Source: Dimorphilus gyrociliatus
Taxonomy: Eukaryota; Animalia; Annelida
Length of the DNA stretch: 64,000 nt
Direction: 5' to 3'
Assembly: GCA_904063045.1 (NCBI GenBank)
Contig: CAJFCJ010000018.1
Coordinates: 620,001-684,000, forward strand
Under the pieces are notes generated by a model. The model saw only the letters and a list, made by a program, of their open reading frames with translations. It had not been told where the DNA came from and searched no databases. Positions 4,543-33,900 of the stretch are shown piece after piece. Within the stretch, counting starts at the first letter, position 1. Every line of letters starts with the position of its first letter. Made by a program: the position numbers and the translations under genes.

Positions 4543-5357
4543 GTGAGTATTTTTTCTATTCGGAGAAAAGTTAATATCTTGTTGTCTTTATTTACGTCAA
4601 GATTTCCCTAGTAGTTTTCTTATTAGCTCTCTCGATATAAAGACTTAAAATTCTCTATTTTTCAAAATAAGTTTTAATGTTAAGATATTGATATAACGAA
4701 ATATTTGGTATCTATTACAAATCACACTCGCACTTTCTTGTTTTTTGAGTATACGCTATTTTTATACATTTATTGATGCACATTAGTAGTGGAGAGAGAA
4801 CACACCCAATAACTATAAATAGAAATATTTAAGAAAAAAACAGGGCAATTTACCCCCTTTTGAGCGTATGTGTTTCGTTTTGCACTTAACCAACAAGAGT
4901 GCAATATAAAGCCGGAGGCAGGTTCGGCCCACCTTTTCATTTTAAAGAACGCACTATCCTCTTCTAGTCATTTTTACGAAACTAATTTGCATTTTACGAC
5001 ATCGCCTTTCTTGCCATACACAATACGTGTCGGCGAAAATGGCATTTTTCGAAAATAACGATTTTTTCATATATTCTTTGTAAGGAAGAGCATGAAGAAA
5101 ACTCACCAAACGTGCATCAGACAGTTTGACAATTTGTAAATACAAAGTACAATTTCAGGAAAATGGACTAAGCAAAATGTAGAGAGTAACATAATATAGT
5201 TCTTTTTAGGATAGCATGTTTTCTGAACTTTGACCTTTTGGTTCTTTCATCAGTCCTACAGTTACAAGTTTCATCCGTACTAAAAAATTTAATTTAAACA
5301 ACTTCTTAAAACATTATTACATAAATTCTATGTTTACAAGCTTTTAAACTTTTTTAG
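4543..5357 (+). other. Putative 5' UTR intron of Hox3
   Basis: Strong donor AG|GTGAGT at 4543 and a polypyrimidine acceptor TTTTTAG ending at 5357, upstream of the Hox3 ATG. Confidence 0.4.
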
Positions 5358-5386
5358 ATATTGCGCGTATATTTTCCGGCTCTCTC

Positions 5387-5408
5387 ATTGGTCGATATCA
5401 GTCACGTG
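5387..5408 (+). promoter_or_regulatory. Inverted CCAAT box + E-box module (ATTGG-N11-CACGTG) of Hox3
   Basis: ATTGG 5387-5391, 11-nt spacer, CACGTG 5403-5408. Same spacing as at Hox2 and Hox1. Confidence 0.7.
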
Positions 5409-5485
5409 GACTGTCAACGTATGCTAATGACGTCTTCATGTCGAAAGCTTGTCAAGGCGAATTGATCAATCAGAAAATCGACAGC

Positions 5486-7510
5486 ATGCAGAAAACTGAT
5501 ACGGACTCTTCAAATTATTACGATGTCTATCAACAACAGCAATTTTATCATCAAAATGGATATCATGGAAACTATCCAGATTATACTAATGATACTTATA
5601 GACAGCATTGCCAACAAATTGCGCCGACAAACTGTCAACAAGATTATAATAATTACGCGACTCATCAGACAAATTTTTGTAATCCTCAAGATCAGCATGG
5701 ATTGGTTAAAAATGAACCAGAAATATATCCTTGGATGCAGGATAATAGAAAAAATATAAAAAGAGGGGGAAAGGAACAGCACATATCATCAGGTAATTCA
5801 TTTTCTTAAAAAATATGTTCTAGTAGTAAACATAACCGACTACTCTAAAGCAACATGCATGCCCTATTAATTGCTGTCAGGCCAAAAGTTTTGTTAAGTC
5901 GTATTTATTTGCCCCATTTGTGAGCAAATTTTATGGCATGAATATCCACTATAAATAAGAAATTGGATAAAAACTATTCATTTTATAAAATGTCTGAATA
6001 TGTATGAATTTAAGAGCAGTCTCCTCGAAATGAACTTAAGTGGATATTGTGCGGAAAAAGTCATCTTAGGGAAAATATAACATAATTTAACCTAGTTAAC
6101 AATACTTTTGGCTTTGAAGCCAAGTTGAAACTTTTCTCATAAAAACTTTTATTTTTGTTGATTTAACCCTGTAGTATTTTAGAGAAATATCCTATTTTAC
6201 ATGTCTAATCGTTTCAAAGTCAATGTTTCTTTTAAAAACTAAACGTAATAGATCGCAACAACTTATAAACAGTAGGAAAAAGGATGCATTGTATACTGAA
6301 AAAAAAACCCTCATAAATTTCACTTGACACGTGTCTGGAAACTACGCAATATCCGTTACGTAATTTCCGTTAACAATCTTAGCGATACGCTGACCAATGT
6401 CGTTAAAAAGCCATTATGACGTCACAATTACGTCAAGACTCTTCTCAAAGAACTGCTTTTCGGAAGAGATTTCATCACTAACTTTTTTTAAAATATATTT
6501 GTTGTGGTTTAAAAATTCTAAAAGTTTTCTTTATCAAAGCAGGTGGTAGTATAGAAAGTGCCGATCAGCCTACAAAGAGAGCTAGAACTGCTTATACAAG
6601 TGCTCAATTGGTAGAACTGGAAAAAGAATTTCACTTTAGTCGATACTTGTGCCGGCCAAGAAGGATTGAGATGGCTGCTTTGTTAAATTTAACAGAGCGG
6701 CAAATAAAAATCTGGTTCCAGGTAAAGAACTTTTTATATTTAATAGAGACATGCAACAGAAAAAACATATAAAAAAGGATATGAAATAAAGCTTTTTTAA
6801 GTTAATTTGATTATTTTGCACAATGAAATTCTGATAAACAACAATAACTTCATTCCTGTATTTTTCCTTTTTTGTTTGATTCAATTTATTTCTATAATGA
6901 GGTCATTCAAGCTGTTAAAATAATTCAACAAGCCTGCTTGAAAAAATGTTTTGAGTACAATATTTTAAATAGCTTTTATAATAAACAGAACCGACGGATG
7001 AAATACAAAAAGGAACAAAAGAACAAAGAATCAGGGGGTGCAATTTCATCAACAAGCTCTGCCCCAGGAACTCCCTTAAACTCCTCAGCTACATCCCAAA
7101 TAAATCAAAATAGAACATCAACACCTGAAGCAGCATCTTCTCCTCTCATATCTCCTAAGTCTGAAAAGTCGTCATCGAACGAGGCCGGCTCAGATGATCA
7201 TGATAGTGAACTTGGAAATGTTGATGAAAAACAACCCAGATCTCCTGTAACAATTCCAGTTCAAAGACCGGCACCCCAACCTCAGAGACATTATCAAACT
7301 CAGCATCATATGGCGAGTGTACCTCATTATTATGCTAATTATCACCATCAAAGTCAATATATACCGGCACACTGTAATGAAATCGCTCCTCCTGTAGCTC
7401 CACCTACAATAGGGATTACGCATGCGCAGTTGAGCGATAATGGCGGATTATGTATGGATGGATATCACGCTCAGGGATATAACGGTTTTAATAAATTACC
7501 GCATATTTGA
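5486..7510 (+). CDS. Hox3: Homeobox protein Hox3 (3 exons, ~335 aa)
   Basis: Exons 5486-5792, 6543-6721, 6989-7510, all GT-AG with matching phases. N-terminus MQK...YYD, hexapeptide IYPWM, homeodomain [50 protein letters not shown]|NRRMKYKKE is diagnostic of paralog group 3. An in-frame ATG at 5438 could add 16 aa. Confidence 0.95.
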
Positions 7511-8964
7511 GTGTATTTTTTAGTGTGAGAGATTATTGTAAAAACCAGGGAAAATATTTCTATCGCTCAAAGTTTATCACCGATTGTTTATATCTGTTCA
7601 TATGTTAGCTCATGCCCAACTTGTATATTTATGAGAAAAAAATTATGCTATGACACTCTTGCCATTTAAATAATTTGACTAGATGTGTGTTACTCGATGG
7701 TTCCGAAATTTTACTGTCTCTATACACTACGTATTTGAATGTATATAAGTGTAAACTTGATGTAAAACGTTGTGTATTTCTATGCAACTACTGTTATAGA
7801 AATGTATTCATCTGTTTTAAAAAAAAATACAGTCTTGTAAATTATTAGAATATTTAGTGACTTTTCAAAAATCTAATTGACATAAATATAATATACAAGA
7901 TATGACTTCCTTTTGGGAAATACTTATAAATTGTTAGACAATCCGCGTCACGAAATAACATCTTACCTAATCTTTATAAATGTATACACAGTAGCGAAAA
8001 ATTCTAATTTTATAACATTCTGACGCATTTATTGCTTATTATGCAATTATTGCTTTTACGTAGTCTTGACGAATGATATTTTACGAGTTAAAAACTTCTT
8101 GAAACTCCTCAACGATTATCATCAACAAGTAGATTTTTTTCCTGTTAATCTCTTAGCTTCATCTATAATATTTAATTTTAACAGATATTCTTTTGAACTA
8201 AGCGCATACAAATTGGCACGAGTACTCGCTCTAAGTGTTACTGTAACGGATGATTTTACTTCACATGTGCCTGGGAGATATTTTCACGCTTTTACAATTT
8301 TATAAAGGTAAAGAAAAGCTAAGAGGAAACCGGAAGAACTCATTGAATACCGTAGTAAACACGAATAGGAGGTAATTTATTCACTGATAATTGCTAGTGA
8401 AAACTATCATACTTATCTCCGATACATCACATTCATCTAATTACAAAGTATTCGTATTAAAATGACACCTGTATGCCTTTTGTCTCATCAAAATGACAAT
8501 ACAGCTTGCATAATGAAGAAGCCTTCAAACGTAGCCGACAGGTTCAGGTGTGACGTCTAAAGTGAGTCAAATTTGCATAAGAAAGGCGTCGATTCGACGC
8601 GCGTTCCTGATAAAGTCACGTATATTTGAATATTTTATAGGTCTATATCTAAAATGGAACTTATTAACCCGTTGTCTATACAAGTAACTTCAATTATTGA
8701 TAGTTGATACAAAATGTTGACCTTATCACGTGCCTCCTTCGTTAAAATCGTACATGCTCCAGACGGATCAAGAGGCGTATTCTATTAACGAATCAGCTCT
8801 TTCAGATTTATCTAAAAATTAGCTAAAGACGCATCTTTGATATGAAATGTATATAAAACAGCCCAGATAAACAGAACTATTAAAATTCTTTGTTTGAGAT
8901 CTAGAATAGCGGATCAATTCCACGACTGCAAAAAAGAGAAAAGAAACCTTATAACTGGACAAGG

Positions 8965-9001
8965 ATTGGCTGTCTCTAAACACGTGACCAAAATGGCTGC
9001 C
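8965..9001 (+). promoter_or_regulatory. ATTGG-N11-CACGTG module of Hox2 followed by a YY1-type site
   Basis: ATTGG 8965-8969, CACGTG 8981-8986, AAAATGGCTGCC 8990-9001. Initiator-like TCAGT at 9050. Confidence 0.7.
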
Positions 9002-9108
9002 TACAGAGCCTTAGCGTGTGGGGAGAGAAGTTTTACGAAAGTTTGCCCGTCAGTGTGAAGATGAGTAGAGTGAATTGAAACTTATCCTTCCAGAAAAATT
9101 CAGCGACT

Positions 9109-11917
9109 ATGGAGTATCCAAACGCAATAGCCTATGATCCAACGATTAATCATCAATTTCCACCAAATCTACAAGGATTCAACGATGTTCCACAATACGA
9201 TTGGATGAAAGAGAAGAAAGGTTCGAGAAAGAAAAAAATGGCGGAGACAATCGGTGTAGAAGGTAAGTTGAAAATGAGACTTAAAAGGAAAGAGAGAAGG
9301 CGGTCTTTGGATATAAGTGTATATGATAAATGACTACGATCGCCGTCATGATTAATGATTGAAATAAAAGAGTAACAGACCGAGAACGATGTCATGCTTG
9401 TTAACAAAACTGTTAAGTGTTCTTCGGAGGTGAGAGGTTAACGATTATGGAATTTTGATGGTCATTTTGAGTATCTTTATTTCGCCGATTTATTCACGCC
9501 TTCCGTTAGAATTATTACTGCTTTCTTTTGACATCTAAATTACCTGTTTATGACCAGATAATCTTAAGTTTTAGTAGCCAGGGGTATATTTCTTTCAAAA
9601 TATTAAAGATAAGCGTAAATGAGTATACTCCAACGCTTAGACTATCGAATAAATCTATTTTTAAACGAAAATTTGATTATTTTCGGAATGGGATATGAAA
9701 GACACAGTTTTGAACTTTAACTTCTTAATAAAGACATTAATAAAATGAGCAAAAATCACACCTGCCCGTGACAAACTCATAAAATTTGTTTATAGGAAAA
9801 AGAATCGATAATATATGACCACTTAGCATCGTAATAATGATAGTTTAATTATACCTATATATTCACAAAAGTGTGGATCTTAATATAGCTTTCTTTCTTA
9901 CTTTTAATACACGTCACTTTCCCCAGAAAGTGTCTAACACAGCAAGTGATCAAGATATAATAATTAGTAGAAAAGTGTTAATTGAAAAAATTCGCTGTTT
10001 CAAATTTCTTAAAGGGTTCTCTTTATTTTAACAATTGAATCAAAGTATACTTTTGGCAAAAAAAAAGCCTACAGTTTTCATTATTTTTGAAACAAACAAC
10101 GGTGTAACTTTATTCGTTGTCTTCTTATTATATAACATATATTTTTACATTTATATTCCGAATTTTTCTATGATTTGTCTTGCAAAGGAAAAACTAAATA
10201 TATAACTAATCGCTAAAAAATTACTTTGCATTGTTTGGTTTATTACGTAAGGTAAATGGAGAAAATATATCCAAGTGTTTATACTATTTGACGCGCGAAT
10301 TTCTGCGCGTGACACTCTGACTCAAAGGTTGCTGAGGTAACGAGAAACGGCGTCGAATATTTTACGGGTTTTTTTCTTCCTTCTGAAATGATTAGCGACG
10401 CTCGAACGGTGCGTGACTGTTGGAGAATTCGAAAAAAAACACAAGAGAACGTTGCTTGTCACCCTCCTTGATCTCTCGAGGAACAGATAATCATGGCCGC
10501 TGATCGACTTTTAGAGCAATAATGAACTATCTTTTTCCACGACAGATAATCCTTTTCTTTTTAAGGATATAATGAATTACGAAATTGGTTATCCCGTAGA
10601 ATTAATCTATATTTACAGATTTATTCATAGAAGTTATCTTTACAATTAAGATAAAAATTAATATTACATCCTTTAAGAGTGTTCTTATCCGAAGGAGGAT
10701 AAACAGTATATAAAAACTCTATTCTTTTCACAAGAATAAGAAAATAAGGAATTATCGATTCAAGATTAATTTACCCTCTTCTTATTCTATTCGTGAGAAG
10801 TACAAAAATCTAGAAGTAAAATATTTCTGGTAGCAAATATTTTAAATAGGTTACTTATAAAATATAGCGTCTTGATAGGGAAATAAGCTATATTGTTGAA
10901 TTTGAAACTCTCTTCTTGAGATATTTGATCTGGTCTTTTTTTTCAGCTGATAACACTATGCCTTCTTTATCTCCGTGCCCTGATTCACATGCGTCTACAA
11001 CGTCAAAACGACAAAGAACGGCCTATACTAATTCGCAGCTAGTGGAGCTCGAAAAGGAATTCCATTTCAATAAATACCTTTGCCGACCACGACGTATTGA
11101 AATCGCCGCAAGTCTTGATTTGACAGAACGACAGGTCAAAGTTTGGTTTCAAAATAGAAGAATGAAATATAAAAGACAGTCAGGGAACGGAAATGGAGAT
11201 TCTAAGGAGCCGGTGAAAGATGAATCTGCAAGAACTGAAAGAGCAGATAGCACAAGCGATTTGGGTACGTCAGAGAGCCACGCGTCTCCTTCCTCTACTG
11301 AACTCTCTCCTTCTCCTGCTGTGTCTTCGAAAGATCCAGAACCGGAAACAAAAAAGAATGAAAATAAGGAATTGCCGCCAATACACAGAGCGAATTTGTT
11401 TAATGCACGCCAATCTGCGGATTGCCAAATGGGATATACTAATCCGCAGTCGGCTGCCAATATGCAAATAAGTATGCAAATTAATAACGCTACATCGGCT
11501 TATCAACAACCAACGAATAATGGAGTATATTCTCCAAACAGTCGAGCATTTTATAATTATTCGTATCATAATACAAATTATCAGCAAAGTCAAGGTCAAA
11601 TGCAAGCAAGCCGTGACCTAGTTTCGTCTGACAGACCGTTAGCGACATCTAGGGGATCTGCCAACAACTATTATTCTACGCCACCTACCGACTCGCTTCG
11701 TCAAATAGAGCAACTGACTTTTTCAACTACAACTATCGAAAAATCTTGTTGTAGGTACAACAGCTCCGATCTGAACTACGTTCCACCTAATTGCTATCAA
11801 AATTCGAATATAGTTGAAAATAATCCAGATGTTCAACCAATTCAAGCCTGTATAAACAATTCTCAGTTTTCTATTTCAGATTATTTTAATAGTGGTAATG
11901 ACTATTATTCAATGTAG
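9109..11917 (+). CDS. Hox2: Homeobox protein Hox2/proboscipedia (2 exons, ~374 aa)
   Basis: Exons 9109-9262 and 10947-11917 (phase 1). Hexapeptide region YDWMKEKK (PG2-type WMKEKK). Homeodomain with [38 protein letters not shown]. Confidence 0.92.
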
Positions 11918-14700
11918 TTTTTAAAAAAATTTCATGTTACTTACCTAGCTTTTGTCGAGTTTAAGTTGTTGCTTTTAATATGCATATTCGAAAAAAAAGA
12001 CACAAAGTACACGAATATTTATATCTATTTGAATTTCTCAATTTTTTAGAGTTTGCACTAATGTTATTGTATTCCCTTTTGTCATATGACAGATTGAAAA
12101 CGTTTAATTGGAAAAAAAATATTTAGTCTCGACTAATTCTGCTAATGTTCATTGGGAATTATTTAATATCTTACTCTAACAATATATCACCTTATGATAT
12201 AAGCGTTCCCTTACAAAATAGTATAATACCCTTGGAGAAAATAAATCGTGTAAAATTCGAGCAAACAAAATGAACCAATCAACGACTTGATTACAAACAC
12301 ATTCCCATGACCTCAATAGATCAAATGTGCTTATTGGCTGACAAATATTTTTGTTTGTTCGTAATGGGATAATGGGCTCTGAGGGTATGGCAAACCGTTG
12401 GTGGTCGTTAGGTTTTGTTACTCATTATTGCCTGGTATTGCTGAACGAAATACCAGCTCTACCGAGTAGTCAGAACCACCCAGACACATATACTCTCGAA
12501 ATAAACACGCTTTTATGTATTGTTATGCAAATTAGTTTCAGTCTAGCCGTCACACTTCAATATGGCGATTCGTGTTACTTTATATTCGAAAAGAAGACGG
12601 TATTGTGGGAATTCGTTTCGATGCTGAATCGTATCATATATTCATTTCAATTATACTTCGTTTAGATCGTTCTTGCACGTAAATATATACCATGAATATT
12701 TTATAAATACTGCTTCTGCCAGGTATGTGATATGAAGTTTTTTTTTTATGTACAGCTTCTTTGTCATCTTGTTTTATTACAGAATAGTTTATAAATTACT
12801 TTAAAAAATATTTTTCCATTTTCCCTCTCTATTATTTCTTTTGCTTTTCTTTCTTATCGAATATTCAAAGGCTAAACGTGATTTATTTCCACTTTTTTGA
12901 CGGAAGCTGAAAAGTATACACTGTATCGAAAAATCGAGAAAAAAAAGAACAATTCTCCAAGTGCTTGTCAATCAATTCGATCAAAGGATAAGTACGCTTT
13001 GCCGTGATCTTTTCCTGTCGCCGAGTGCCCTTCAACTCCCGCCGCGTTTCATTTGTTCTGTCCCTTTAACAAACACTTCGTAAATAGGTCGTATTTATGG
13101 CTCTTTTTTTTGTCATGGCGTCTACATGAATGTAGGCATCCGCCAACTGTTAAACAGAATGCTGATCGTGAATAGTTAAGCTTTTATAGCGTTAAAGTTC
13201 CAGTATTTCTAAAGACTTAAGAAGTCAATAGCAACGAGCTTTCACCTTGTAGTTAAAGAAAACAATTCATCTTTTAAATTGATCGACAACTGATAAAGAT
13301 TTTATTCAAGGGTGTTTAAGATATTCTAGACGACAATTATATTCAGGGATCGGTAATATATATGACGTGTAATTCTATGCAAATTATTACGTAAGGCTAA
13401 ACCTTTATTCCGTTGGGTTATTCAAGTGTAGTTTTCGGTTGAAATTACTAGTTGAATGACATGCAGAAATATATTGTGTAATTATATGGAGAGCCGGTCA
13501 GATAAAAGGACTGGCAGGAATAATAATTAAATCCCACCAACAGGTATTTTATTAAAAAGCAATTCTATTATTTCAGCTTTGGTGTATGTAATGATAATGG
13601 CAATAACAATAATAATAACAACCAGCTTTGCCAAAAATAGTTTGGATTCGGAAAGGGTTGCATAAAGACAACGTCAACTGAATGAAAAATAAACGATAGT
13701 ATTGATCTGTCGTTCAAACTCAGCCAGCTAAATCGGGCGAGGTAAAAAGGCAGGTGCCATAGCTTTAAACGGTGTCGGTGACATGTAAACACCCAGTTTG
13801 TTTACTATGTAAAAGATCTGTGAAAGGAGCTGACTTTTGGTCAAGATGGCTTTTTTCGCTCTTGGATGAGGTCGCTGAGGTCGGATTTCATTTACTCTTC
13901 AATTTTTCTTAAATCCAGCACTTAAAACAAAGTAACGAACACCCGACCTTTTGGTACCAAAGCGTTAACCCTTTATTTTCTCATTTATATAAAGAATCGT
14001 CTATTAATGGATCGAAATATCCCCCTCTTTTTTTCAAGGATTTTCACTTTTAAAGGGACTTTACTCTAAGGCTGAGAATAACAATAATTTGTTTTACGTA
14101 ATGATGACGTAATGCAATAAAACTGCAACAGCTGACGCAGGACTTGTCAAACCGAACTGCAGTACAGTGATATTGTTTGTTCAGCTTTGTTCGCACTTTG
14201 TCTATGCTCTTATCTTGCTTATCTATAGGATAGAGTCTGTATACTTTTATTCAACGATAATGAAAATTTTGCTGAGGGAAAGTAAATGAAATATTTTACG
14301 ATAAAATCACGACATTGAGAATTTCTCCCAGTTCCATTGTATAGGCCTGCCTACAAGAGCATTAGCATACACTAAAGTATTTGTTGACTTATTACATCAT
14401 TTATCTAAACGGTCCCACCGCTGGCTTTGTTGCAAAAGTTTCTGTATTTATTCAACGTCGCCCAATCAATTTTCAATCTGGTTTTTCTTCCGTAGAAGCG
14501 AAGCGTTATGTTAAAAGTTTAACAATTGTTACTTTTAAATAACAATGTTTTTCCTTTTATAAATTTATTAGATGTATTTATGTTGTTTCTATCAGAACAG
14601 TAAATTGTCCTCAAAATAATACTAATTAATCTTACAGTTTGTATCAAAATATAAATAACCTCCTGTACACAGCTTATAGTTATCAGGAGAAGACATACGC

Positions 14701-14715
14701 ACAGACACAGACACA

Positions 14716-14770
<55 letters not shown>

Positions 14771-14781
14771 TTATTTATTTA
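14701..14781. repeat. Compound microsatellite (ACAGAC)3-(AT)~24-(TTTA)n
   Basis: Directly visible tandem repeats between Hox2 and Hox1. Confidence 0.95.
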
Positions 14782-15539
14782 TATGTATATATACTGTATA
14801 TATATATATACACTTGTATATACACTACCGGGTATATGAAATATCCCGTAGATGAACTGAGCGTTATATACAGTATAAACGAATGAATAAAAATATAATT
14901 ATAAGAATGCTCCGTTGCTTGTAAAATATTGATGAATATAAATATATATTAACATTTAAGGAAAACTATACCTTTATCTATATAAACATATAGACTATTA
15001 CTTAAAATCAGTTAAGTAAAACTGAGTCCTTTCAAAGCACGATCTCATTGTAGTATTCAGTATTCTTCATTCTACTATTATTATATTAAGAAATTATTGA
15101 AATAAAGGGGTTAAAGCTAGTGTATTGTAAGGAAATTTATCGATGTATGAGTCTAACCCAAGAGTTTTGCTGATAATAATAAATGTACACAATTATATTA
15201 TGGATATGCGCAAAATAATTTATAAGATTTTTTTACTAGCGATTCTTCTTTGTGCGCATATTTACCACTTAATCTCATAGATTTTGATATAACTATAATG
15301 CTGTATACATGCTATTCTTATAAATTCTACGTATTCCCATCACCTGATCGAACTACTATATCGATCGCCTTCAGCGTTGCTATAGAAACGCTTAGTTTAG
15401 TATTTTAGAAAACTTTTATAAATTGCTTAAATACCTGTTATTTATATAAACTAAATAGAGAAAAATTAAAAATTAGACCGGTCAACTAGAGAACAAAATT
15501 TTCGAGTTATAAAACCCGCAAGAATTGATCGCGTTTGTG

Positions 15540-15561
15540 ATTGGCTACCGTAGATCACGTG
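15540..15561 (+). promoter_or_regulatory. ATTGG-N11-CACGTG module of Hox1
   Basis: ATTGG 15540-15544, CACGTG 15556-15561, 74 nt upstream of the Hox1 ATG. Confidence 0.7.
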
Positions 15562-15635: not shown

Positions 15636-18081
15636 ATGAATTCGCAAACCACCGAATATTCTCTGTGCAATCTAGACTCTTCTAGTCATAATTATGCTGT
15701 TTCAGCTTTCACTGAAGCAAATTGCTATTATTCAGCGTCAGAAGGTAATGGGGGACATTTCGAACATTACGATGGAACTTATGGAGGACATTTCGGACCG
15801 AATGATTTTTATTTTCCTAGTCAAAACGAATCATGTGCACCCAGTCATGGACCGTCAAATTTCTGTTCTTTTTCTCCTTCCTCTGCTGGCAATGAGGCCT
15901 CAAAGTTGGGAGCATCTAGTGAAAACCAACAACAGAATGACCAAGCTGCAACTTACAAATGGATGACTGTGAAAAGGAGCAATCCTAAAACTAGTAAGTC
16001 TAAAAGATCATTCAAATTTAGCCGTTTTAAATTTCTAGAACAAATTACCATATTCTCACTATATATTTACGGTTGAACGACCCAGTTTCTATTAATTGAA
16101 TAGAGCGCGCGCGAGTCACGACTATTCAATTTTCTTAAAGGATTTTTACCATATATTTTTTTATATAAAAGCTTTTACCATAATTTTCTATATAACTTTA
16201 CGAATATCACGAGATTTCATGATCAAACTAAAATCTGTGTAGCATCCGTGCATTAAGGACAATATAACGTAATGATAACCTAGCGTGACCGTCTATGACA
16301 AAAGCCATATCCCTAAAGTTTTATTCTTTTACAACATGCAGGAATTTTCTTTCAGATCCAAAGTATACCTAGCCTATTATAAACACCATATATATATATA
16401 TATATATACCATATTTAAATTTGTATATAAACGTATAGTATTATATATATTAGTCTATATATATATATACTCGTATAGTATATGCATGTGAATCTTCTGA
16501 TATATATACATATACAAGTATATATTCTCTCATATAGTGTTTATATTTATGAATAAATATCTTCATATAGTGTTATTGGTTTGTAAACCTTTAAAAACTT
16601 GGCAAATAGGATAAATCCTGTTCTTATTAGGTTTAAGAGTAAAGGCTATAATACAGCAGCCAAAAAAAAATCTTGTGGGAAAAAAACTTGTTGTAATTAC
16701 ATAAATATAAAACTATATAATCGTATAGAGCACGATTGGCTCCTCACATTTTATGAGTACATTTTTGGAATAAGGACAAGGAAATAGAACTGCAGCTCAT
16801 CCAAGCCAACGAGAATATTGTAATTTAAATAAACGATGACAAGAAATTATCGGTGGTCAAAGATAGAGTCTATCTATTTCTAAAATCTAATGCTAAGAAA
16901 GAAGAGCTTATGATCTCTTGATGATATTTTACTACGAGGAATATCAGATCTTTTATAAGAGAGAAAAAATGCAAATAGATAAACACAGGATAGATTTCGT
17001 TGTATAGTTTCCGTTGCAATTTGAAAGTAAATATAAATAGAAACACGTGTTTGCATATTGACGGTATCTATGCCCTGAAAACCCCTTCAAATGGCTTACA
17101 CATGTTTGTAAATAGTAGAAAAGAAGAAAAAAAAATAGAGCAGAACTTCTGTAACCTCTAAGTATATAGAAAACATCGTAGTAATAGAAATTAACTGTAC
17201 AATAAGACGCGTATGCAAATAGATGCAAATCTTGAAAAACAAGCGGCTTAACGCTTTAGCGTCGCGTTTCAGAAAAATTATGAAATATATTAAACGCTTT
17301 AGCGTCGACGCGCAAAAAGAAGCCTGAAAAAATTCTTTGTTGCAAAACTAGTGATTTATAGCTGCTTCTTCATCACTGTCCTCTTTTGTTGCAACACCTG
17401 CGGTCATTGTTTTTTGCAAGACTTTCACCCTTGCGCTATTTTGACCTTTTTTTCAAAAGTATGGACTATTTGATATATAGATCGCGACATTGATCAAAAC
17501 ATTCCAAAGATTGATCATGTGGCAGTCTATTTCCTGTTTTCTGATTGACACGAGATGGGCGGAGTTTTTGAATAGCAGCATGCAATTAGCGGTAAAGAAT
17601 CACCTTTCGTCTGATTGTTGCTTTGTCAGAAATGAAAATTTAAAAAAAAAATAAAAAACAACTAGGTTTATTCTCGCCGTAAAACGAAATCTAATTATAG
17701 CGAAAGTTTTATAAATATTTCAGATAAGTCGGCAGATTACAGCGGTGGCTACCCACCAGCCCAGTCTCAGCCGAATATGGGACGAACGAATTTTACGAAT
17801 AAACAACTAACTGAATTGGAAAAAGAGTTTCACTTCAATAAATATTTAACGAGGGCCAGGAGGATCGAAATTGCCGCAGCTTTAGGTTTAAATGAAACAC
17901 AAGTAAGTATGAATTATTATAGTTTAAACAAAATTTAACAGATAACGACCTTCTCCAGGTAAAAATATGGTTTCAAAATCGGCGAATGAAGCAGAAAAAA
18001 AGATTAAAAGAGACTGGTTTAACTATGAACGACGTTGCGGAAACCGCTCAGTCCTTATCGTGCGATGACCATAGCAGATAG
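15636..18081 (+). CDS. Hox1: Homeobox protein Hox1/labial (3 exons, ~219 aa)
   Basis: Exons 15636-15993, 17724-17902, 17959-18081. N-terminus MNS..EY, hexapeptide TYKWMTVKR, homeodomain [42 protein letters not shown]|[15 protein letters not shown] with the labial-type intron after Q44. Confidence 0.97.
17250..17307. repeat. 15-bp exact direct repeat AACGCTTTAGCGTCG (2 copies) in Hox1 intron 1
   Basis: Copies at 17250-17264 and 17293-17307, each containing the inverted repeat ACGCT-TT-AGCGT. Confidence 0.85.
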
Positions 18082-30962: not shown

Positions 30963-33900
30963 ATGGCATTAAACGGTCAAACTGAATTCGAAATTAAGAA
31001 CGAGATAGACAATGGAAGTGAAAAGCTTTACCTGAAACATAGCCGCTTTAGTGTTCCAAGGAGTTCGCTTGCGAGACAACATTCAACCGGAAACGTAAAA
31101 GACGCCTATTCAAATGGCTTTTACTGTACATCCTGTGCTCAGAATATTTCGAAACCGGTAAATGAGGGGGATAAGATTAACATCGACGTTGAAGAAAAAA
31201 ATAGAGTGATAGCAGCTGATAATGCTCCCCAATTTCATAGCCGACGAAATCAGAGGATTCTACCAGTAGCTCAGTAAGTTCTTTTGCAACTTTCACTGGT
31301 ATCAATCAAAGTTACACATTTTCTTTCTTTGAAAAGAAAAATACGCCCAGTCGTTCAAGAATATGTAATAGGTAATTTAATTGAGCTATTGTTGGGGACA
31401 ACACACAGAGTTGTTGCGTTAAATCTCTTGAATTATTCCCCGTCTGTTCAATATTTTATAGCGAGTCAATTTTTTAAAAGCTCTTTTTTTTAAATCGAAT
31501 TCCTAGGCATAAAATAGTTATAACATTGTTTCGGTAATAAATTCCTGTATTCTTTTTATTTCTTTATATTAGAATTTTTAGTAAACAAACTCCTATCTAC
31601 TCTGTACGCATACTAGCAGATGATAAACATGAACTCAACATTCCACGTGACTTCCGTCTGGTGGAACACGAGAAAAACGTCACGTGATTAAACATTATCG
31701 TCGCTTAGAGCACTCAGAAAGTATTACACTAATATCTTAGCTCCTTTAAGGCGACTATATAATTTATCGCTTTAAGTGGATTTATTCTGCTGTGAGGCCT
31801 TATAATCCTTTAACGGAGTTCGTAATTTCGAGACCTCTACTAATCAACTTTATTGTCAATAATCTACAATTAATATTTCCTAAAACTGTCATAATAGGTT
31901 ATCATTGCTTGCTATTACTTTTTATTATACCAAAAAGATCGACTCTTAAAAACAGCACAATTGGCGGATACCCAAAAGTGCATTGAATACTTAACAGCAG
32001 ATGGCACCACTCACATGGATATATCTGCTTAACTTAATTTATGGATAGACTACAAGAGTTTCCTGTCTGCTCTACAAACTTTTTTCTACGCGGGCGGGCT
32101 TATAGAAAAAACATGGTCGATGATTCACAGTTCAAATGAAAAGAATGCCAATCAAATTTATTTAGCCCAGATTTTAACGATATATCATAGATTTTCACTT
32201 CTTACGTGCCTAATTACAACGAGGCTATTAACTTTTCAAAGATTGTATAAAAAATTTGTACAGAACACATTAAATGTCATTTGAATCGATTCATTTTCTT
32301 TAGTAAACAAATTAAAAAGTTTTCTAATGTATGTCATAAAATATTTTGTATAGTGTATGATAGCTTTAAATTGAATTTTTTTTGTATAGGTATTGTGGTA
32401 GAGAATCAGCTGATGCCTTTAGTGCCGATAATGCCATCTATCGTCAAAAGTGGCCAAAAGATGTTTCTATCAATGTTAAATCCAATAAGATTCATGCTCA
32501 TCGTGGAGATTTACGAGAAGACAGCAAAACAGGTCAACTTTATCAACCAGTAGATGTACAGATAACAACAACCAACTTTAGAAAAGCTCAAAAAAGTGAT
32601 CCTTGTGACTTAGACGAAGCTTTGAAAATTTTAAAGGAAGCCAGTGAGTTGTCAGTGGAAAAAAATTCTTTTGGAATCCCGAGATCTAAGAGCTATTCAA
32701 GTTCATTTAGAGATCAAACAAGAGTATTCACTGAGCATGCTAGAAATAAGAACAACAATAACTCCTCTTCTCGAAATTCCACAAATCATTTGAACGCGTC
32801 CAATGTAAATGGAAATTACTCGAATTCTTATCGAGAGAGGGCCTACTCCGTTGAAACAAATCCAAAACTACTTAAATCTGAAGGGCCCAAGCCTTCAAAA
32901 AGTGTGCATTTTGATGTTTGTGAGAGCTCTAATAGTGAGTTCAGTCGAGGTTTGCAAGTGTCTGAACCAAGGCTGTCAAATTCTGATACTAATGTTAATG
33001 GTAATTATCATTTTCCAAGAGGAAATCATACTGCCTTCAAAGAACGATATCAGAGCTTACCTCGAGATGTGTCTCAACTAGATAATCGCCTTAGCCAACC
33101 CCCTGTCCATATTCGAGTCTCTTTTCAGAAATTGAATGATTGCGATGAAGATTACAACGGCTACATTTCCCCTTTGGATGTTGCCGTTAAAGATAAAGTA
33201 ACATACGAATATGATATGAAGAATCTAGATGATATTTTAGAACAAGCAGAATCCATACTAAATGATTTAGAAGACGATAAAGACTACGGTAGAGATAGTG
33301 AGATGATGGATAAACCAATTGAAAGAAGGGGCTTCACCTACAGAACATACGTCGGACCTATCAATAGTACACCAGTAATGAACGTACGAGCAGATGTACA
33401 TAAAGAGCCTAGTCCTGAAATAATATGTGATGAAGTTCTTGAGAATGTAAAGGATGATAAAACTTTCGATGTAATAGAAGCAGGTTTCGATAGAAAGATG
33501 TACCTTTTAGAAAAGAGACATGGATCAAAACCTAGTGACACTTTTACAAGAGAAAAAAAAGATAAACAAGAAGAGAAATTGTTGAATCAAGCCTTTGAAA
33601 AATTAACAGAAGAGATTGAAGGCTTATCATCTCTAAGTGATATTAGCTCGAATTCTCAAGACAGTCAATTGCTATCAGGAGAGGCTGTTGAAGAGTTCTT
33701 TAAAAACACTCCTGAAAAGGATAGCGATAGAAAGCAAAAACTACGAGAGAAAGTATTGAAGAAAGGAGAAAATTATAAATTAAACCAGACAGCAGATTCT
33801 CTAGTCACGGAACCACTAAGGTGAGTTACACTTGACCTGACAAAACCTACCTACTGTATTTTATCAAAGCAATATTTTTATACTGTTAAATTTAAGCAGG

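Follow-up and report, generated by a model that had tools for sequence, protein, structure and literature searches.

The 64-kb stretch of Dimorphilus gyrociliatus DNA analysed here (contig CAJFCJ010000018.1, positions 620,001 to 684,000; the window) contains three Hox genes, and in front of each start codon lies the same paired site, an inverted CCAAT box (ATTGG) followed after 11 nucleotides (nt) by a CACGTG E-box, referred to here as the module. Six-frame scans placed the three genes on the + strand, with the hexapeptides YPWM, YDWM and YKWM and homeodomains of Hox3, Hox2 and Hox1 type, respectively. Hox2 exon 2 matches D. gyrociliatus DgyrCDS11152, on the same contig, at 100% identity, and the nine Hox genes of the species are known to form a compact, ordered cluster, with trans-splicing excluded (PMC7854359). 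The modules and the genes lie at the following window positions.

5387-5408, + strand: Hox3 module, exact match (inverted CCAAT box 5387-5391, 11-nt spacer, E-box 5403-5408)
8965-8986, + strand: Hox2 module, exact match (inverted CCAAT box 8965-8969, 11-nt spacer, E-box 8981-8986)
15540-15561, + strand: Hox1 module, exact match (inverted CCAAT box 15540-15544, 11-nt spacer, E-box 15556-15561)
5358-5792, + strand: Hox3 first coding exon (acceptor AG 5356-5357, canonical start MQK 5486, YPWM 5726)
6540-6721, + strand: Hox3 exon 2, followed by the intron 6722-6988
6989-7510, + strand: Hox3 exon 3
9021-9262, + strand: Hox2 exon 1 (probable transcription start 9021-9026, ATG 9109, YDWM 9196, donor after 9262)
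10947-11917, + strand: Hox2 exon 2 (homeobox 11006-11179)
15636-18081, + strand: Hox1 (exon 1 15636-15993 with YKWM 15954, exon 2 17724-17902, exon 3 17959-18081)

An exact pattern scan of the window found ATTGG-N11-CACGTG three times, always on the + strand and nowhere else, at the three places where the first-pass annotation of this DNA, made from the letters alone, had put it. The E-box ends 77 nt before the ATG of Hox3 (5486), 122 nt before that of Hox2 (9109) and 74 nt before that of Hox1 (15636), in agreement with the proposed distance of about 125 nt or less, and the spacers differ in sequence among the three modules, as had been noted. Dinucleotide shuffles of the window gave an expectation of 0.01 copies and none of 100 shuffles reached three. 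When the gap was relaxed to N5-25, no further ATTGG/CACGTG pair appeared in the 64 kb, and no site in the window had the opposite CCAAT orientation relative to the E-box. CACGTG alone is over-represented, with 13 occurrences against 3.7 expected; the earlier listing had given nine of these, omitting 6328, 17044, 29301 and 39646 and placing at 31648 a site that lies at 31644. Two of the CACGTG sites fall within Hox3 intron 1 (6328) and the first intron of Hox1 (17044).

The individual sites are of good quality. On the antisense strand, the three CCAAT boxes have the sequences GACCAATGA, AGCCAATCC and AGCCAATCA, and all of them fit the NF-Y flanks RRCCAATSR. The class B E-box CACGTG is exact in all three modules; with its flanks it reads GTCACGTGGA, AACACGTGAC and ATCACGTGAT, with at least one T-flanked half-site in each, and in Hox1 it forms the palindrome TCACGTGA, centred on 15556-15561. 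T-flanked CACGTG half-sites are the preference of USF and MiT factors. These flanks, the gap and orientation known from a human composite site and the parallel with human HOXB4, both described below, fit the interpretation first given to the module, namely that it is a site for NF-Y and USF. The same DNA element could also be used by other proteins or with the opposite sign, that is, by MiT/TFE factors, Max/Mlx partners, Hairy/E(spl)-type repressors or NFI on ATTGGC, with a role in repression or timing. This has some evidence behind it, since the HXRE-1 site of HOXB4 was first named an NF1 site and MITF also bound its HXRE-2 (PMC2193192), TTGGC is kept in worm Hox1 and Hox2, in the Hox3 of a close relative and in a mite pb gene with a broken CCAAT pentamer, and the Myc network of dinophilids is divergent, without MNT and, in D. 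gyrociliatus, also without MAD (PMC7854359). On the other hand, an 11-nt gap in a fixed orientation is the signature of human NF-Y with USF or MAX, not with MYC (PMC3730095, PMC4889920), the CCAAT pentamer and its NF-Y flanks are intact in all worm copies, and the ATTGGT of Hox3 is not an NFI half-site. Overall, we regard other binders as an unlikely explanation of the module, if one that deserves some weight.

Conservation was first assessed in a close relative, represented by a Logan contig of a worm whose Hox2 protein is 91% identical and which covers the Hox3 and Hox2 modules. Both checkable modules are kept, that of Hox2 with all 22 nt identical and that of Hox3 with two changes in the spacer. 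As observed in pairwise alignments of both genes, the DNA from the module to the ATG is nearly invariant (100% identical over this stretch in Hox3), in comparison with about 60% identity farther upstream; in Hox3 and Hox2, the modules mark the 5' edge of a constrained block. Another near-identical block lies about 250 nt upstream of the Hox2 module (window 8700-8760), in which the E-box at 8727 directly follows a TGACCT nuclear-receptor half-site.

A further possibility is that the modules are not promoters and instead separate or anchor the chromatin of adjacent Hox genes, as boundary elements. USF is a known barrier factor, and there is one copy per gene, in a single orientation, in a very compact cluster. 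Moreover, USF1 and NF-Y are able to bind unmodified or Polycomb-marked chromatin (PMC3730095). Nevertheless, the position of the module is tied to the ATG and not to intergenic midpoints, human sites bound by both NF-Y and USF did not act as acetylation barriers (PMC3730095), and in reporters the HOXB4 element works as a promoter (PMC2193192), all of which makes a boundary role very unlikely in our judgement.

Transcript evidence came from assembled contigs, and the start positions are therefore approximate. For Hox2, runs X4 and X2 of two relatives gave mRNA contigs, of which that of X4 begins at 9021 and that of X2 ends at 9026, abutting an Illumina adapter; these contigs are all spliced from 9262 to 10947. 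In these two relatives the contigs thus start 35-40 nt past the E-box and 52-61 nt past the CCAAT box. At promoter-proximal NF-Y sites, the CCAAT box usually lies about 60-100 nt before the transcription start. A Hox2 transcription start 35-40 nt downstream of the E-box, which is probable from these contigs, would correspond to the usual NF-Y position.

The Hox3 transcript has a different structure. An abundant contig of run X7, which is D. gyrociliatus-like, spans 5356-5790, continues by splicing at 6538 and carries at its 5' end 28 letters that are foreign to the window. These letters match exactly an exon of the relative about 6 kb upstream (L006), which ends in an AAG|GTATGT donor; therefore, Hox3 has a distal leader exon spliced to the acceptor at 5356-5357, and in D. 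gyrociliatus this exon lies more than 6.2 kb from the module, beyond the start of the window. Spliced-leader trans-splicing was considered as the source of the 28 letters and rejected, given that they belong to a genomic exon with a GT donor and that trans-splicing has been excluded in this species (PMC7854359). As a consequence of the splice structure, the main mRNA carries the Hox3 module 30 nt into its first coding exon, and the module is transcribed. The annotated Hox3 product (405 amino acids) begins upstream of the DNA analysed, and its coding sequence seems to start in the leader and to read through the module; since the canonical MQK start sits at 5486, this model is probably an annotation artefact and the MQK start is more likely. 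Directly before the Hox3 leader exon there is a ATGCAAAT octamer (L006 3900-3990). Within the coding region, the Hox3 homeobox is interrupted by a 267-nt intron between WFQ and NRR (position 50/51; 6722-6988), and that of Hox1 by a 56-nt intron between Q44 and V45 (17903-17958).

The presence of the module within the mature Hox3 mRNA, and also in several environmental contigs that look like cDNA, raises the possibility that it acts in RNA, as a 5' untranslated region element for translation or stability, and the complete identity of the Hox3 module-to-ATG stretch in the relative would agree with such a role. Against this, the Hox2 transcripts of two relatives begin downstream of the module, RNA folding of the three module regions gave no signal when compared to shuffles (z = 0.80, -0.99 and 0.71), and an Rfam search returned no family match. 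In addition, a palindromic hexamer and a pentamer with a fixed gap and a free spacer is the pattern of proteins that bind double-stranded DNA. We consider an RNA element extremely improbable, and the reading developed below is that of an element acting in DNA.

A wider comparison was made with distant loci retrieved through Hox2 homologues, from Alosa, a handfish, Priapulus and the mite Blomia (four loci, 134 kb). Alosa hoxb2a has an exact ATTGG-N11-CACGTG 191 nt before the ATG, and the flanks ATTGGCT and CACGTGACC are common to this gene and the worm Hox2. Alosa hoxb3a has GTTGG-N11-CACGTG 69 nt before MQKTTYYD, with an extra CCAAT 10 nt past the E-box. The handfish carries an exact ATTGG-N10-CACGTG 134 nt before the ATG of hoxb4a, GTTGG-N11-CACGTG 81 nt before that of hoxb3a, and ATTGG-N11-CACATG, an E-box with a decayed CpG, at hoxb2a. 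The position in hoxb4a would be that published for human HOXB4 if the human numbering counts from the ATG. Among the ecdysozoans, Hox2 of Priapulus has ATTCG-N11-CACGTG 155 nt before the ATG and pb (Hox2) of Blomia has GTTGG-N11-CACGTG at 342 nt. In the four loci, all N10-11 hits with at most one mismatch in ATTGG were found at Hox gene starts. An AT-rich Logan contig with Hox2 exon 2 (L014) showed no recognisable exon 1.

Several side observations were made at these loci. An A(T)TGGCTG motif lies 6-10 nt past the Hox2 E-box in the worm (8987-9000), the fish (L012 9810-9835) and the priapulid (L010 9847-9870); it forms a second ATTGG box in the fish and a YY1-like AAAATGGCTGCC in the worm. In Priapulus, 6.5 kb downstream of Hox2 (L010 33591-33632), an E-box stands between ATTGG (N14) and CCAAT (N12); no gene could be tied to this mirrored site by exon search, and it may be the Hox1 promoter. 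The handfish RefSeq model 'Hox-B3a isoform X1' (560 amino acids; L013 10001-37687) is a fusion with two homeodomains, joining hoxb4a and hoxb3a exons.

A metagenome scan with the Hox2 alignment provided an environmental set of 80 Hox-type loci (365 kb). Exact ATTGG-N10-13-CACGTG occurs in these loci in seven sense copies, all of them upstream of an ATG, when 200 Markov simulations gave an expectation of 0.29 sense copies and a maximum of two; the single exact antisense copy is the mirror partner in L022. The carriers are the following.

L022, vertebrate Hox3 whose N-terminus looks fish-like and unlike human: N11, 78 nt before MQKATYYD
L037 and L044, contigs of a Dfd-like gene: N13
L045, divergent Hox gene with a Hox2/3-like homeodomain, perhaps from a gutless-worm metagenome: N11
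Three Antp/Lox5-like genes: N12, N12 and N11

Approximately 22 environmental genes have 200 nt or more of DNA upstream; about one third of these carry an exact copy, and others have one box only or a different gap. Three related Hox genes that start with MSSFVQA or MSSFIHA (L052, L059 and L077) share CCGCC(C/T)ATTGGC 300-370 nt before the ATG, followed in two of the three by TAAT and in all three by no CACGTG at the expected gap; this site looks like a CCAAT-only version of the module.

Taken together, these comparisons support the earlier proposal that the element is paralog-wide and possibly ancestral to bilaterians, as exact or one-base-off copies are present at fish hoxb2a, hoxb3a and hoxb4a, at a fish-like Hox3, at priapulid and mite Hox2 and at environmental Hox genes. 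In Hox3, the module-to-ATG distance is 77 nt in the worm, 78 nt in the fish-like contig and 81 and 69 nt in the two fishes, and each copy has a pyrimidine tract and an AG 17-29 nt before the CCAAT box. This AG is the splice acceptor in the worm and may be one in the vertebrates. It could be argued that a common general composite was gained independently by different Hox genes and lineages, its geometry being imposed by protein constraints and not by descent from a proto-Hox gene. Indeed, about 2,700 human regions bound by both NF-YB and USF1 have such spacing, many of them in long terminal repeats (LTRs) (PMC7046753, PMC3730095), only 11 bases are specified, the spacers are unrelated, and many environmental Hox genes lack the module. 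However, the orientation relative to the gene is constant, the Hox3 distances are alike and each is accompanied by the pyrimidine tract and AG, the worm and fish Hox2 share flanks, and in the 570 kb scanned in total no exact copy was found outside Hox upstream regions except for one mirror partner. The constant orientation, the likeness in distance and the common flanks favour descent, and we consider convergence quite unlikely.

We therefore hypothesize, and hold it to be likely, that the three sites of D. gyrociliatus are copies of one inherited promoter-proximal NF-Y/USF composite element that acts at the DNA level. The inverted CCAAT box would be the site of the NF-Y trimer and the CACGTG 11 bp downstream that of a USF-type basic helix-loop-helix leucine-zipper dimer, and by analogy with the human composite and human HOXB4 the two would bind side by side. 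The bound pair may keep the promoter nucleosome-free and competent for transcription and may set initiation about 60 nt past the CCAAT box, with spatial control supplied by other elements of the cluster. Since the same orientation and similar distances to the ATG recur in several Hox paralogs and phyla, the element would have been inherited and not newly assembled in D. gyrociliatus. The first-pass annotation spoke of a 'core promoter grammar'; strictly, the module is an upstream, promoter-proximal site and not a core promoter.

Several points weigh against this interpretation. NF-Y/USF binding at the worm sites is a prediction, made from motifs and analogy, and the module count in D. gyrociliatus covers the 64-kb window. 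Among the environmental Hox-type genes for which upstream sequence is present, about two thirds have no exact copy, and several of the environmental carriers look like cDNA with the module in the 5' untranslated region. The ecdysozoan and fish hoxb3a copies have an altered CCAAT pentamer (CGAAT or CCAAC), of a kind normally not tolerated by NF-Y. The Hox2 start was read from contig ends in relatives and not from cap-selected reads, and in run X7 a contig of low depth extends without a break from 7876 to 9262, crossing the Hox2 module, so some RNA or DNA reads through it. Finally, the main Hox3 mRNA begins at the distal leader and includes the module. Because this mRNA and the cDNA-like environmental contigs contain it, the module is not upstream of every transcript. 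Transcription starts far from the module had been named beforehand, together with a spacer mutation of no effect, as evidence that would speak against it; Hox3, with its distal leader, goes some way in that direction.

The inherited NF-Y/USF element is of interest for the regulation of Hox clusters in general. Shared distal enhancers, Polycomb and chromatin domains are regarded as the main means by which these clusters are controlled, and what makes the individual Hox promoters compatible with shared control is much less known. A common NF-Y/USF platform, from annelid to fish to the human HOXB4 and HOXB7 described in the literature, would supply such a promoter compatibility element, and it would carry results obtained in human blood cells over to Hox genes generally. 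It is probable that the module is an element of Hox promoters that is both shared and very old. A bolder version, on which we find the case evenly balanced, is that it descends from the proximal promoter that the ancestral Hox gene had, copied with the tandem duplications and kept for more than half a billion years. If so, a syntax of CCAAT, about 11 bp and CACGTG, in sense orientation about 70-190 nt before the ATG, would have been retained in several protostome and vertebrate paralogs and would be one of very few non-coding features traceable between the two groups. The Hox3 module would then have been kept in place in annelid and vertebrates, just past the acceptor that opens the first coding exon, about 69-81 nt ahead of MQK, and would act there as an internal promoter below transcripts coming from farther upstream. 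Non-coding conservation that can be aligned between protostomes and vertebrates is very rare, and for this reason an oriented, positional syntax that survives would be useful as a marker of ancestral Hox structure.

The type of element is already known; its breadth across paralogs and phyla was previously undescribed, as a literature search, with some subscription papers outside its reach, returned no earlier description of cross-paralog or cross-phylum conservation. The closest general counterpart is the human NF-Y/USF composite (Fleming et al., 2013; PMC3730095), which has the same motifs, 11-bp gap, orientation and promoter-proximal location as the worm module. In human chromatin immunoprecipitation sequencing (ChIP-seq), the position of the E-box relative to the first C of CCAAT is -12/-11 and orientation-specific, and this geometry is kept at USF1 and MAX sites and not at MYC sites (PMC3730095). 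Other studies gave an NF-Y/USF gap of 10-12 bp (Dolfini et al., 2016; PMC4889920) and placed the CCAAT downstream of the E-box, 17-18 bp from centre to centre (PMC7046753). The worm pattern reads CACGTG-N11-CCAAT in reverse complement, so gap and orientation agree with the human composite. The two differ in their basis and in where they occur: the definition of the human composite comes from ChIP-seq in cell lines, and its sites number thousands, in promoters, enhancers and LTR12 repeats, whereas the annelid module is predicted from sequence and concentrated at a single gene family.

Among Hox genes, NF-Y, YY1, Sp1 and USF-1 are cited as regulators of the human HOXB7 promoter (Meccia et al., 2003, as cited in PMC3976385). 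The same two factors would act there on a further Hox paralog, and the YY1-like AAAATGGCTGCC after the worm Hox2 E-box may be another point of likeness. Another parallel is human HOXB4, whose promoter, like those of the worm genes, pairs an ATTGG-type site with a CACGTG E-box; in HOXB4 they lie about 130-150 nt before the coding start. When its 99-bp promoter is mutated, 60-90% of the activity is lost with a TT to AC change in HXRE-1, the NF-Y site, and 90-98% with a change in the E-box HXRE-2, and USF1/2 bind and activate it (Giannola et al., 2000; PMC2193192); cooperation of NF-Y and USF at this gene has also been described (Zhu et al., 2003, as cited in PMC3675019 and PMC7046753). HOXB4 is one vertebrate paralog studied in blood cells, compared here through its published description, whereas the worm copies belong to Hox1, Hox2 and Hox3. 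The HOXB4-type arrangement, with both sites in sense orientation upstream of a Hox start, is present at the three worm genes, at fish hoxb4a, hoxb3a and hoxb2a and at environmental Hox genes.

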